From Raja brachyura (Eukaryota): 64,000 nucleotides of DNA. Below the pieces are notes generated by a model, which was not told the origin of the DNA, did not search any database, and was given only the letters and a program-made list of their open reading frames with translations. Below, in pieces: positions 52,739 to 56,582 of the stretch. The stretch spans positions 558,001 to 622,000 of the forward strand of contig OY740826.1 of assembly GCA_963514005.1 (NCBI GenBank). Direction: 5' to 3'. Both the position numbers and the translations under genes were made by a program. Position 1 is the stretch's first letter. Each line of letters begins with the position of its first letter.

Positions 52739-53157
52739 CTGCCTGATGAGCAAGAAGAAGTTCCTGTACCACTTCACCAATGCCCGCTGGGCAAAGGGGA
52801 GGCATGAAACATATGTGTGTTACGTGTTGGAGCGCCGGGACAGCCCCGTCTCCCGCTCGCTGGACTTCGGCTACCTGCGGAACATCCCGGGGTCTCACGC
52901 CGAGGTGCTGCTCATCCGGATACTGTCCGGCTGGCCCCTCGACCCCTTCAGGCCCCTGTGCCTCACCCTCTACGCCTCCTGGAGCCCCTGCGCCCAGTGC
53001 TCCTTCCGCCTCGCCTCCTTCCTCCAGCGATGGCCCAACCTCACTCTCCGCCTATTCGTGGCCAGACTCTACTACTGCGAGGGCTCCGGACCCCACCCCG
53101 GGGGTCTCCGGCAGCTCAGAGTGGCGGGGGTCAGTCTGGGGGTCATGGGGTACACAG
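52739..53157 (+). CDS. AICDA: AID/AICDA-like cytidine deaminase, coding exon equivalent to mammalian exons 2+3 (419 nt; in-frame ATG at 52746)
   Basis: Acceptor ctccacag; CLMSKKKFLYHFTNARWAKGRHETYVCY...RRDS...SLDFGYLRN...HAE...SWSPCAQC...ARLYYCE...GLRQL..AGV; phase-1 donor G|gtacgg. Confidence 0.93.
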
Positions 53158-53159
53158 GT

Positions 53160-54770
53160 ACGGGGAGGGGACGGAGGGAGGGAGTTGGGAGGGGGAGATG
53201 GGTGCAGGGAGAGCGGAGGAAATGAGGGAATGCGGATGCTAGAGAGAGGGAGGGGGTACTGGGGGATAGGTGAGAGGTTGGGGCGAGGGAGGGAGAGATG
53301 AGGGAAGTGTGGATGGGAGGAAAGGAGGAAGGGGTACGGGGAGGAAGAGGGGTATACAAGTATGCGGGACAGGGTGAGGAGCGGAGAGGGGGTGAGAGGG
53401 ATGGGTAAGGGTAAGGCGAGAGGGAGGGATAAAGGCGAGGGAGCGGTTGAGTGGGAGGGTGGGAGTATACAGGTATGGGGAGTGGAAAGGGGAAGGGCAG
53501 TAGGGGGGGAGGTGAGGAAGATGGGAGGGGGAGAGGGGGCGAGGGGACAGTTCAGTGGGTCAGGACCCCACCTCGGGGGCAGGCTGAGGTAATGGCAAAT
53601 GGGAGGTCATGGGACATGGGGGTAGTGTGGATGACCAGGGGGAGAGGGAGGGGAGAGGTAAAGGGGTGGGAGGAGGTACATGGATACAGGGGATTGGAGA
53701 GGGGGAGAGGAGAGGGAGAGATGGCGAAAGAAAGAGGGAGGGGAAGAAGTACAGGGGGAGAGAGGGGATGGATAGTTGAGGGTGAGGGGAGAGGGAGAGG
53801 GGCTACAGATGTATGGGGAGGGGAGAGGAGAGTGAGGATGGTGGAAAGGGGTGTAGGGAGAGGGGAGGTAAGGGGAGGGTCTGGGGGTTGGGATGAACAG
53901 AGGGGAAGGGGAGAGAGGGAGGAGCAGGAGGGACAAAGAGTAGGGGGAAGGGGAGAGGGGCAAGGCTAGGCACCATGCGGTACAGGGGGCAGGGGAAGAG
54001 AGGGGTGGTGGGGAGGGGCTGAGGACCATGGGATACAGGGGTATAGGGTGGGGTGGGGAGGGGGAGAGAGGGAGGGGGAGAGAGGGAGGGGGAGAGAGGG
54101 AGGGGGAGTGGGAAGGGGGTGCGTGGGAGGGGGTGAGTGGGGAGGAAGGGTGGGAAAAGAGAAGAGAGGGGCTGGGGTCACAGACACGCGGGAGAGGAGG
54201 GAAGGGGGGAGTGTAGGAGTGAGAGGGAAGGGGAAGATCAGGAGAGAAGACGAGAGGAGGGGGAAGTGAAGAGAGGAAGGGAGGGGGAGAGGCAAGGTGA
54301 GGTGAGGATGGAGGAGCGATGAGAGGGAAGGGGAGAGGATGGAAGGGGAAGGGGAGAGGAAAGAAGAGGCTGGGAGGAAGTGTGAAGGCAAGAGGAGGTG
54401 TTGAAGAGTGAGGAGAGGAGGGGAAGGGTGAGGGGCGGGGAGGGTGAGGGGCGGGGAGGGGTACGAGAGGGAGAGTACAGGGGAGAAGAAGGGAAGGGAT
54501 AGGGGCAGTAGGAAGGGGATGAGTGTGGAGGAGAGAGGGCAGTGAAGGGGACGGAGGAGGAGAGAAGGGGAAGGCAGTCGGAAGGGGTTGGATGGTTGAG
54601 GGGGGGAGGTGAGGAGATGGGGAGAGGTGAGTGGAGGGGTAGTGAGGGAAGAGGAGAGAGGGCAGTGAAGGGGAGAGTGAGGTGAAGGGGAGAGGAAAGA
54701 GGCAGTAGGAGGCGAGGTGGGGGAAGAGGTAGTGGGGGAAGAGGAGAGGGAGAGGTGAGGGTAGGGGGCC
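53160..54770. repeat. Extremely G-rich intronic low-complexity tract
   Basis: Direct reading; strong G/purine skew on the sense strand. Confidence 0.9.
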
Positions 54771-54808
54771 GTTTTCTCTCACCCCTGCTTTCTCCCTCTG
54801 ACCCCCAG

Positions 54809-54924
54809 ATTATTCCTACTGCTGGAATAATTTTGTGGCACGTCGGGGGTCTCTGTTCAAAGGATGGGACGGGCTCCAATCAAATTCAGTCAGGATTTCA
54901 CGTCTGCTCCGGAAAATTCTACAG
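54809..54924 (+). CDS. AICDA: AID coding exon equivalent to mammalian exon 4 (116 nt)
   Basis: ccccag|AT TAT...: [39 protein letters not shown]|gtccgt; phases match both neighbouring exons. Confidence 0.93.
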
Positions 54925-55014
54925 GTCCGTGACTCTCCCCCTGCCTCTCCCCCTGCTCCCCCCCCCCCCCCTGCTCCCCCTCCCCTGCTCCCCCCCCCCC
55001 CCCCCCCCCCCCCC

Positions 55015-56030
55015 ACTTGGAGTATTATGTGCAGTTCCTGTCGTTAAGCTGCAACGGGTGCAGGGAAGATTTACAAAGACATTGCATAGATCCCTGAACT
55101 GGCGTCACAGGAATTAAAGACAGAGATAGAGTAAACAAGCAGAACCTTTTCCTTGCAGGATGGAAACATCAAAGACTAGAGGGCATAGCTTTAAGGTGAG
55201 AGGGGTAAAGTTCAAAGGAGGTGTGCAGTGCAAGTTTAATTACACTAATGTCCCACCAGCATGCGACTCCATGCGGTGAGCGCAAACTAACGTGGTCGCT
55301 TGAGCAGTCCGGCCTCGCGGGGCCAGTCCCACTTCGATCGCCGGAGCCGTATGTAGATGTGCGGATGGTCCCGACATCGTGCGGGGCTCCGAAAAACTGA
55401 CCGTGTTCAAAAATTCCACACGGCAACGGCTTGTCGGCCCGCAGCGACGCGTTACGCACCGCCTCGACATCGTGCCTCCGTGACCCTCTGTATGTGTGCC
55501 TCTGTGACCGTCTCTATGTGTGGCTCCGTGACCCTCTCTATATGTGCCTCTGTGACCGTCTCTATGTGTGCCTCCGTGACCCTCTCTCTTACCACGGACA
55601 TCGCTCCAACTTCGCGCCACGTCGTGCCACTCACCCGACCTCCGCGCGGCCCCCGTTGCCGGTTTGGTCGCGCTCGCTGCATGCAGGCGCATGCTGGTGG
55701 GACGGGCCCTGTACGGGAAGCACCCGACCTCCGCGCGGCCCCCGTTGCCGGTTTGGTCGCGCTCGCCGCATGCAGACGCATGCTGGTGGGACCGACCCTG
55801 TACGGGGATCACCCGACCTCCGCGCGGCCCCCGCTTCCAGTTTGGTTGCGCTCACCGCATGGAGTCGCATGCTGGTGGGACAGGCCCTTGTTCGTCGGGA
55901 CCTGGAACGCACTGTCGGGGTGGTGGTGGAGGCAGATATGCTAGTGGTGTTCAGGAGACTTTAAGATCGGCACATGGGAGTGCAGGGACTGGAGGGATAT
56001 GGATCACTTGCAGCCAGAACAGATCAGTAA
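55015..56030 (+). mobile_element. CR1 3' fragment in the AID last intron, split by a MITE
   Basis: CR1 pieces at 55015-55240 and ~55890-56030. Confidence 0.7.
55249..55888. mobile_element. Harbinger-like MITE with internal 24-bp and 81-bp tandem repeats
   Basis: ~37-bp inverted termini TGTCCCACCAGCATGCGACTCCATGCGGTGAGCGCAA; the right end continues GGCCCT. Confidence 0.75.
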
Positions 56031-56528
56031 TATGGATTCCGTCCCTTTCCCTCCCCTCGCTCGTCCCCCCTCCTATTCCCTATCACTTCTTCCTCCCTCC
56101 CACAACCCCCCTCTCCCGTCCCTCCATCACCTCATTATTTAAAGTTATCTCTCTTGCTCCTCACCCTCTCCATCATGCTTTCCAACACACCATCCCTCCC
56201 TCTCTCCTGCCACCCTCTCCCTCGATACCACATTTTACCCCCCTTTCCCCCCTCTCTTTCTTCCTATCACCCCCTCGGCTCTCCCTCCCTCCTTCCACTC
56301 TCTCCTCCTTCTCTCCCCTTCCCTCCCCCTTCACCTCTATTTCTAACATTATCACCCTCTCTCTTTTCTCTCCACCCACACCGTCCCCTTCTGTCCCTCC
56401 CCCTCCCCCCATATGACCTCCTCCCTTAACCCCCTCTCCCTCCCCTTTCCCTCTCTCCCACCTTCCCTCTCCACCTGCTCCAAGTCTAACATTATCTCAC
56501 TCTCTCTCTCCCCCCACCCCATTCGCAG

Positions 56529-56582
56529 CCATTGGATGAATTTGAAGACTTCAGCGAGGCCTTCCTAATGCTCGGTCTTTGA
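56529..56582 (+). CDS. AICDA: AID terminal coding exon (54 nt including stop), C-terminal NES region
   Basis: attcgcag|CCA...: PLDEFEDFSEAFLMLGL* vs human PLYEVDDLRDAFRTLGL*. Confidence 0.92.
   Translation, partial: PLDEFEDFSEAFLMLGL

Follow-up and report, generated by a model that had tools for sequence, protein, structure and literature searches.

A divergent AID gene in skates, probably the lineage's single AICDA orthologue, with one intron absent

Introduction

Few enzymes of adaptive immunity are as strongly conserved as AID. Departures from the norm are known from pipefish and anglerfish, which have lost the gene, and from the cod family, in which the enzyme is inactivated; every one of them has altered thinking on how far antibody hypermutation can be dispensed with. 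Skates serve as a classical model of the oldest immune system that is built on Ig.

A five-exon structure of AICDA has been described as conserved among those bony vertebrates that were examined (PMC9795746), and sequence preference reportedly varies between the AID orthologues of other fishes (PMC8201067). In our literature search, neither skate AID nor the exon structure of AICDA in cartilaginous fishes was the subject of any paper. The AID of Gadidae resembles the skate gene described here in being an intact orthologue with a lineage-specific departure from the vertebrate norm (PMC9795746). It differs in that its loss of activity has been measured and its five-exon structure kept. The skate change is also older than that of Gadidae and is common to all three skates sampled. 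Here, we describe this gene in a 64-kb stretch of the genome of the skate Raja brachyura (the window).

Results

A first-pass annotation of the window had proposed three spliceable exons of 419, 116 and 54 nt that form an open frame. Direct reading of the sequence confirmed the AG and GT borders of exons A, B and C and the single frame that runs through them (Table 1). A long pyrimidine tract and AG acceptor occupy positions 52700-52738 of the + strand, with ctattttctccttctttccctctctctctctctccacag immediately 5' of 52739. The codon at the start of exon A is split, with 52739 as its third base, and exon A encodes AID residues 3 (in part) to 142 together with the first base of codon 143; the codon for D143 is divided g/at by the A/B junction. 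We searched the three exons separately and used the database skate protein P0001 for full-length comparisons and for the fold. The exon B product was identical at 35/38 and 36/38 residues to P0001 and P0039, respectively, and the exon C product at 17/17 residues to P0001. Both the A/B and the B/C junctions match the start and end of tetrapod exon-4 open reading frames (ORFs; P0098-P0107), and the last two coding introns retain their ancestral position and phase.

The bony-vertebrate coding pattern of 8/148/271/116/54 nt is not the pattern of this gene: the exons of 148 and 271 nt are present as one exon of 419 nt, whereas those of 116 and 54 nt are kept. The five-exon pattern describes a gene and is no criterion for membership in the protein family. 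The site of the absent intron lies between 52886 and 52887 (+), in phase 0 between codons 52 and 53, where the sequence reads ...aac atc/ccg ggg... without interruption. In the unspliced ORFs of tetrapod contigs (P0034-P0037), the match to AID breaks exactly after LRNK, at codon 52, and the alignment of the skate gene with shark and ray AID is gapless across this site. The intron absence had been called exact on the grounds that 419 equals 148 plus 271, and the contiguity of codons 52 and 53 bears this out. From a related species, a 484-nt DNA contig covers 52712-53194, and with it the whole fused exon, unbroken. Over the repeat in the last intron, depth in contigs of relatives runs into the tens of thousands. 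Among sequencing runs searched for exon A, 20 contained it, under 8 organism labels, and 0 of them were recorded as RNA. Relatives' reads over 50650-56649 consisted mainly of transposon noise, and splice joints were not found in the contigs.

The gene is intact from exon A onward, and for the first coding exon, of 8 nt, we have a weak candidate. With it, the protein would begin M-E-S, followed by CLMSKKK; the nurse shark protein P0119 starts with MESCLM. The candidate is the sole match in the window to the pattern ATGGANAGGT, for which the chance expectation is about 0.9 on both strands of 64 kb and roughly 0.07 on the + strand within 10 kb upstream; it does not stand clearly above chance. It sits in unique sequence and has G at -3 and +4. 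The NCBI models of two other skates begin instead at an internal Met that corresponds to the ATG at 52746-52748.

Table 1. Positions of the AID gene features within the window
Feature	Position	Strand	Description
Candidate exon 1, coding part	49179-49186	+	ATGGAGAG then GT; weak candidate
Fused exon A	52739-53157	+	419 nt; AG at 52737-8, GT at 53158-9 (read directly); equals tetrapod coding exons 2 + 3
RRDS	52833-52844	+	Residues 35-38, S38 kinase (PKA RRxS38) site; exon A translation
HAE	52896-52904	+	Exon A translation
TLYA	52965-52976	+	Exon A translation
SWSPCAQC	ends 53000	+	Exon A translation
Loop 7, LYYCEGSGPHPGG	53067-53105	+	Exon A translation
Intron A-B	53158-54808	+	Polypurine; sense strand G 56%, C 6%
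Exon B	54809-54924	+	116 nt; AG at 54807-8, GT at 54925-6; residues 143 (part)-181; equals tetrapod coding exon 4
Intron B-C (last)	54925-56528	+	High-copy repeat at about 55050-56050; 24-nt and 89-nt tandem arrays
Exon C	56529-56582	+	54 nt including terminal TGA; AG at 56527-8; last coding exon

The zinc motifs HAE and SWSPCxxC, the RRDS motif and an export-signal-like C-terminal tail had all been reported for this gene, and all are present in the translations. The tail, PLDEFEDFSEAFLMLGL, is encoded by exon C and holds F193, L196 and L198. The zinc deaminase motif H-x-E...P-C-x-x-C that marks the AID/APOBEC family occurs once only when the whole window is translated in all six frames. Two further AID-like tblastn matches, at 59789-59893 and 63246-63341, contained stops, lacked the motif and had E values of 0.3-4, and were rejected. 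Pfam searches returned APOBEC-family matches for exon A (E 1e-36) and exon B (APOBEC_C, E 6.8e-9).

By sequence, the protein is closer to AID than to APOBEC1/2/3/4. The best solved-structure match to exon A was human AID, with 135 residues aligned without gaps (E 4.5e-46), and all named matches in two database searches were AID. A structure model of skate P0001 matched structures of the AID/APOBEC family at TM about 0.8 and was matched best by AID crystal structures (TM 0.82), with 56% identity, as against 34-39% identity to APOBEC3 structures. The PKA site and the leucine-rich export signal are regulatory features of AID. An estimate of about 55% identity to human AID also held up, with exon A 56-58% identical to mammalian AIDs. 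The parts on which catalysis and regulation depend are retained, namely H56, E58, C87, C90, SWSPC, Y114, the basic N-terminus, the S38 kinase site and the C-terminal export signal, and the net charge is kept at about +11.

Where the skate protein has TLYA, PCAQC and LYYCEGSGPHPG, the turtle protein P0009 has TWFT, PCYDC and LYFCEDRNAEPEG at the equivalent places. The first-pass annotation had read these as changes at normally conserved sites. The motifs are indeed present, but not all of them are peculiar to skates: PC-A-x-C occurs in a teleost AID (P0019) and a GxxPHP loop in stingray and manta. Canonical AIDs (Scyliorhinus P0002, nurse shark P0119 and human 5w0z/5w0r) share with the skate protein the 198-residue numbering, without gaps, and canonical shark and tetrapod AIDs share H56/E58/C87/C90, SWSPC, the S38 site and the export tail, and their last two introns lie at the same positions and in the same phases. 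By contrast, skate AID is only 56-64% identical to them, ten universal residues are replaced and the intron after codon 52 is absent, unlike the five-exon structure described for the bony vertebrates examined (PMC9795746).

We then compared the gene with the AIDs of other batoids. Exon A was 94% and 93% identical to the sole annotated AIDs of Leucoraja erinacea (XP_055521283.1) and Amblyraja radiata (XP_032870578.1, '...deaminase-like'), respectively. Both carry the same odd motifs (TLYA, PCAQC and GSGPHPGG) and have the exon B and C products in common with it. They differ from it at 8-10 of 137 residues, with residue 92 being F, H or L across the three species, and their NCBI models are 193 aa long, from the internal Met start. 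The AIDs of the stingray Hypanus sabinus (XP_059816583.1) and the manta Mobula birostris (XP_072106424.1) form the sister group. Like skate AID, they are low in lysine and align without gaps, and they share with skates alone the residues V29, G118, P121 and H122, three of which lie in loop 7. Unlike skates, they keep all ten of the positions that skates have replaced (TWFS, F61, Y76, E124, K142, F145 and others).

In a tree built from AID sequences only, the three skates grouped together (100/100), skates grouped with the rays stingray and manta (95/90) and chondrichthyan AID formed one group (100/99). This placement inside the AID tree agrees with the species tree. An AU test that placed skates outside sharks and rays gave p = 0.063, and this alternative was not rejected at 0.05. 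In a protein database that includes the RefSeq proteins of two skates, neither the skate exon nor canonical shark AID as query found a canonical AID of any skate; one skate AID cluster was returned, and the shark query recovered ray AID at 75% identity plus that single cluster. No host gene beside AID was recognised in the 64-kb window, where the long ORFs are mostly transposon proteins. With long AID models as tblastn queries, one of which was a fusion with the MAGP-domain (PF05507) gene that neighbours it in mammals, the window outside the AID gene yielded nothing but chance matches.

Further comparison revealed that the divergence is specific to skates. The stem branch measured 0.62 substitutions per site for skates and 0.13 for rays, and protein change on the skate stem is about 4-5x that of the sister ray lineage. 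In the Tajima relative-rate test of skate versus ray, unique changes numbered 35 v 13 (p = 0.0015); the skate tests taken together gave 35 v 13, 37 v 14 and 34 v 14 (p 0.001-0.004), whereas ray v shark (14 v 9) was not significant. Identity to shark AID was 68-71% for amniote AID and 75% for ray AID, but only 64% for skate AID. At 10 of 83 near-invariant AID positions, all three skates had a replacement (K16T, K34E, F61L, Y76L, W80L, F81Y, E124G, K142T, F145S and L172I), at residues otherwise fixed from sharks to mammals; ten other lineages had 0-3. T140 is also replaced in skates (by G). We count about 30 replacements on the skate stem. The description 'unusually divergent' was therefore apt, since the stem length, the relative-rate tests and the near-invariant positions all mark the branch as abnormal. 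Of two outcomes that the first-pass annotation had coupled, grouping with batoid AIDs and a normal branch length, the former was found but the latter was not.

Branches among crown skates are short (0.008-0.046). Together with the identity of the ten replacements in three skates, this indicates renewed purifying selection; since the burst on the stem, AID has hardly changed among skates.

The fused exon also stands out in composition. GC3 was 0.87 in exon A, 0.50 in exon B and 0.53 in exon C. In exon A, GARP residues are raised and FYMINK residues lowered, and its replacements comprise about 15 AT-to-GC changes as against 6 GC-to-AT changes. The burst was probably due in part to a local GC-biased process, for example biased gene conversion at a site prone to recombination; selection may also have acted. 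The same trend (fewer K, more GARP) is already seen in rays and therefore cannot alone account for a burst that is specific to skates.

Discussion

The gene had been put forward as either a fast-evolving orthologue or a second AID paralogue. Our sequence comparisons favour the former: it is best read as the skate AICDA orthologue, an ordinary copy rather than a second paralogue, given that its counterparts are the sole AIDs annotated in two skates, that it is sister to ray AID and that it carries the batoid-only residues. With fair confidence, we regard it as the single AICDA orthologue of the lineage, which evolved fast on the skate stem and then came under constraint, with one intron absent and a GC-biased process contributing. 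The alternative, in which the gene is a second AID paralogue that has taken on an APOBEC3-like role and a canonical AICDA has a different locus, would fit the very long branch and the AU result (p 0.063), and an absent intron is typical of retro-derived copies. However, two introns stand at ancestral positions, and the gene is therefore not a retrocopy. The single skate cluster in a database that holds the RefSeq proteins of two skates, the sister position to ray AID (95/90) and the batoid-only residues also count against a paralogue, which we consider very improbable. The anti-retroelement role proposed for such a paralogue found no support; similarity to APOBEC3 is the lower one (34-39% versus 56% to AID), and an additional AID-like skate gene was not found in the protein database.

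The enzyme has most probably remained a deaminase of cytosine in single-stranded DNA at antigen-receptor genes, possibly one of changed rate or sequence preference. Replacement of the core aromatics (W80L, Y76L, F61L and F145S) and loss of T140 could lower its activity. That AID function truly changed on the skate stem, whether in hotspot preference or kinetics or by a cod-like loss of activity, together with the intron loss and the local GC-biased burst, is in our judgement possible but rather unlikely. One form of such a change is decay: constraint would have been relaxed along the stem of the skates, and an enzyme whose frame stayed open would have lost most or all of its activity. Skates have many germline-joined Ig genes, which would fit such a history, as would the replacement of T140 and of ten otherwise fixed positions, including core aromatics that adjoin the zinc site. 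An intact yet nearly inactive AID in Gadidae provides a precedent (PMC9795746). On the other hand, the catalytic residues, SWSPC, S38, the export signal and the net charge are all retained, and the shared replacements and short crown branches speak for renewed purifying selection, so that we hold decay to be doubtful. We give equally little weight to adaptive retuning, in which positive selection on the stem altered substrate preference, kinetics or partner binding. A burst followed by conservation would suit it, as would the loop 7 changes relative to rays (E124G, T119S and T120G), the changed surface lysines K16, K34 and K142, and the differing sequence preferences reported for other fishes' AID orthologues (PMC8201067). 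However, the lean from AT to GC and the very high GC3 in the fused exon are consistent with a process that is not adaptive, and the loop 7 signature is mostly common to rays.

The burst is skate-wide, and among the residues it replaced are aromatics of the core, adjacent to the zinc site, and some positions in the target-reading loop. The ten sites, with ray AID as an unchanged sister, make up a defined and testable set of natural variants, and GC-biased conversion may here have remodelled an enzyme of immunity. Should the activity of skate AID prove ordinary, the finding would shrink to an orthologue that evolved fast and lost one intron. A functional shift, if true, would be the first functional divergence of AID in cartilaginous fishes and could connect with the unusual antibody gene organisation of skates.

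Structure of the AID gene

Direct reading of the window revealed an intact AID-type deaminase gene that is conserved among skates. The exon borders, the reading frame and a zinc motif (HxE...PCxxC) that occurs once in the whole window, in any frame, upheld the three-exon AID-type gene proposed in the first-pass annotation. Base 52739 completes a split codon begun in an upstream exon, the junction between exons A and B divides codon 143 into g and at, and that between exons B and C falls between codons. Translation yielded CLMSKKKF...GVMGYT for exon A, (D)YSYCWNNF...RKILQ for exon B and PLDEFEDFSEAFLMLGL for exon C. 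We searched the exons separately and made full-length comparisons with P0001, the database AID of another skate; residues are numbered on the 198-residue shark protein, in a gapless alignment.

Features in and around the AID gene
Feature	Position	Strand	Details
AID exon A (fused; tetrapod coding exons 2 + 3)	52739-53157	+	419 nt; preceded by AG and a 39-nt pyrimidine tract, followed by GT (direct reading of 52500-56800)
AID exon B	54809-54924	+	116 nt; AG and GT borders
AID exon C	56529-56582	+	54 nt; AG 5', TGA at end
Candidate AID exon 1	49179	+	sole window match to ATG-GAN-AG-GT; 3.55 kb upstream
27-nt tandem repeat	48320-48885		20.8 copies, 87% matches; directly upstream of the unique stretch with candidate exon 1
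Degenerate direct copies upstream of exon A	50725-50814, 50923-51018, 52355-52434		identity 74%, 69%, 67%
Polypurine, G-rich stretches	53158-54808, 49200-50500		on sense strand
Very high-copy repeat	55050-56050		in last AID intron
24-nt array	55472-55587		4.8 copies, within last-intron repeat
89-nt array	55632-55888		2.9 copies, within last-intron repeat
Apparently intact retrotransposon ORFs upstream of AID	27936-30853, 24486-25357, 5000-8400		endonuclease/reverse-transcriptase pair (541 + 429 aa), envelope-like ORF, DIRS/retrovirus-like polymerase region

The precise absence of an intron, also claimed earlier, was confirmed: 419 equals 148 + 271 nt, and codons 52 and 53 are contiguous, leaving the tetrapod intron site after codon 52 uninterrupted between 52886 and 52887. 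Unspliced contig ORFs (P0034-P0037) marked the tetrapod intron position, matching AID up to LRNK and then entering the intron. In exon-4-only ORFs (P0098-P0107), the match starts at DYFYCW and stops after RRILL, the same borders as exon B here. Most or part of exon A was found in sequencing runs under eight organism labels, and one 484-nt DNA contig from a relative spans 52712-53194 unbroken, so the fused exon is contiguous in that relative too. A five-exon aicda is reported to be conserved across the bony vertebrates examined in a comparison containing no cartilaginous fish (PMC9795746); the loss could be confined to skates or date from much earlier. Our literature search yielded no paper on AID in skates or on how the gene is organised there.

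The NCBI models of the two other skates, Leucoraja erinacea and Amblyraja radiata, open at an internal methionine (MTKKKF, 193 aa), whose equivalent ATG here is at 52746-52748. Ahead of this ATG, two codons for C-L (compare MDSCLM in shark) come after a strong acceptor, which makes it likely that a short coding exon lies upstream. The match at 49179 is a candidate only for this exon 1: it lies in unique sequence, with G at both -3 and +4, its product would be MES, the start seen in nurse shark, and shuffling gave a chance expectation for the pattern of 0.9 per window, or ~0.07 on this strand within 10 kb. The degenerate copies upstream of exon A correspond to the acceptor tract plus 60-90 nt from the start of the fused exon, and none of the three reaches the deaminase domain. 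The last-intron repeat reached a summed contig depth of tens to hundreds of thousands in two related species.

Identity and orthology

Exon A matched APOBEC-family Pfam models (E 1e-36) and exon B the APOBEC C-terminal model (E 7e-9); Pfam holds no AID-specific model. Among solved structures, human AID was the best match to exon A (135 residues without gaps, E 4.5e-46), and a word search with this exon returned AIDs alone from the protein database. The AlphaFold model of P0001, of moderate confidence (mean pLDDT 76.6), was closest to AID among crystal structures (TM 0.82, 56% identity), followed by APOBEC3 domains (34-39% identity). Judged by homology and predicted fold, the window gene encodes AID. 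Outside the window, the Logan contig P0076 carries a mammalian-type AID, a glycine linker and a segment with a bacterial H-NS-type Pfam domain, and probably derives from an engineered construct sequenced in a public run.

The best match to exon A was the AID of L. erinacea (little skate; 94% identity), whose 90% cluster includes the A. radiata (thorny skate) protein (93% identity). Both carry TLYA, PCAQC and GSGPHPGG (TWFT, PCYDC and a different loop 7 in turtle AID P0009), and their exon B and C products differ little from those encoded here. The window thus represents a third skate, and its unusual traits extend across skates.

The first-pass annotation had left a choice between a fast-evolving orthologue and a second AID paralogue. 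With canonical AID from a shark (Scyliorhinus torazame, P0002) as the query, a search recovered shark AIDs at 87%, stingray AID at 75% and amniote AIDs at 68-71% identity; for skates, the sole match was the divergent cluster, at 64%. No canonical skate AID appeared in this protein database search, which covered the RefSeq proteins of two skates, and one present in that database would have matched easily. In a maximum-likelihood tree of 25 AIDs, the three skates grouped together (100/100) with stingray (Hypanus sabinus) and manta (Mobula birostris) as their sister (95/90), and skates and rays fell inside cartilaginous-fish AID (100/99). The effect expected of long-branch attraction is the opposite, to separate a long branch from the rays. 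Skates and rays also have in common V29, G118, P121 and H122, three of them in loop 7, which no other AID of the set has. Although an AU test of skates placed outside sharks and rays stopped short of formal rejection (p = 0.063), the tree and the ray-shared residues support an orthologue, and we consider a second paralogue very improbable. A retrocopy origin was ruled out because two introns keep their ancestral positions and phases. The remainder of the window consists of transposon ORFs, and no host gene other than AID was recognised in these other 60 kb.

Divergence and conservation of skate AID

The earlier description of this orthologue as unusually divergent proved sound. The skate stem was the longest branch in the tree, at 0.62 substitutions per site versus 0.13 for the ray stem. 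In a Tajima relative-rate test with a shark outgroup, skate and ray had 35 and 13 unique changes, respectively (p = 0.0015), and other triplets were similar; ray versus shark (14 and 9) was not significant. Turtle and mammal AIDs are nearer to shark AID than skate AID is. Ten of the 83 positions at least 95% conserved among 22 non-skate AIDs had been replaced in each of the three skates (K16T, K34E, F61L, Y76L, W80L, F81Y, E124G, K142T, F145S and L172I), and 0-3 in each of ten other lineages, including teleosts. Branches within skates are short (0.008-0.046) and the three species agree in all ten replacements, a pattern resembling an initial burst and subsequent constraint. The earlier claim that changes fall at normally conserved sites stood for TLYA, which is unique to skates, but held less well for the other two motifs: PC-A-x-C also occurs in a teleost AID (P0019), followed by a very similar helix, and the GxxPHP loop is common to skates and rays.

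Skate AID retains H56, E58, C87 and C90, the catalytic residues in established AID numbering, together with SWSPC, Y114, the R19-W20-A-K22-G-R24 stretch, RRDS with S38 and an export tail whose hydrophobic pattern is intact. A net charge of ~+11 is also retained, with four lysines versus 8-10 in sharks and a drop in acidic residues too. Residue 140 is glycine in skates and threonine or serine in most AIDs. Residue 92 (53004-53006) is F, H or L across the three skates, the rest of the helix being fixed, which makes it a possible fast-evolving site among skates.

Composition and possible causes of the burst

GC3 was 0.87 in exon A, 0.50 in exon B and 0.53 in exon C, against a window background of ~0.46. 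Compared with shark AIDs, skate AID is richer in G, A, R and P (GC-rich codons) and poorer in F, Y, M, I, N and K (AT-rich codons), with rays intermediate. When residues shared by ray and shark were taken as ancestral and the window's own codons were used, the 23 confident exon A replacements comprised ~15 AT-to-GC and 6 GC-to-AT changes. The high GC3, the amino acid enrichment and this lean are what a GC-biased process in the fused exon would produce, and such non-adaptive drive is one of three readings of the burst. It is not the whole cause on its own, however, because exon B, with its ordinary GC3, was also accelerated (skate-ray identity 64%, shark-ray 79%) and the GC trend predates the skate-ray split. 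The two other readings are adaptive retuning and cod-like decay; among earlier cases of an AID orthologue departing from the norm, that of the cod family is the nearest parallel (PMC9795746). Fish AIDs are reported to differ in sequence preference (reviewed in PMC8201067).

No RNA-labelled run was among the sequencing runs with exon A; two small runs guessed as RNA contained short contigs inside exon A, DNA-like in appearance, and no intron-skipping joint was seen in contigs of the runs examined. By analogy with nurse shark, skate AID would act on Ig and TCR genes, deaminating cytosine in single-stranded DNA. It has a repacked core (61/76/80/81/145), fewer surface lysines and a changed loop 7, and these differences may have altered its rate, optimum temperature or motif preference.

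Exon A is bordered by polypurine and G-rich microsatellites. The intron that follows it is 56% G and 6% C, and upstream GC skew reaches 0.64. In whale shark, an annotated AID model (P0007) continues beyond the equivalent exon end as glycine/arginine-rich sequence, a hint that the intron there may be similar. In the skate, the polypurine and G-rich stretches could form R-loops or G-quadruplexes in and before the gene for AID, itself an enzyme that acts on structures of this kind.
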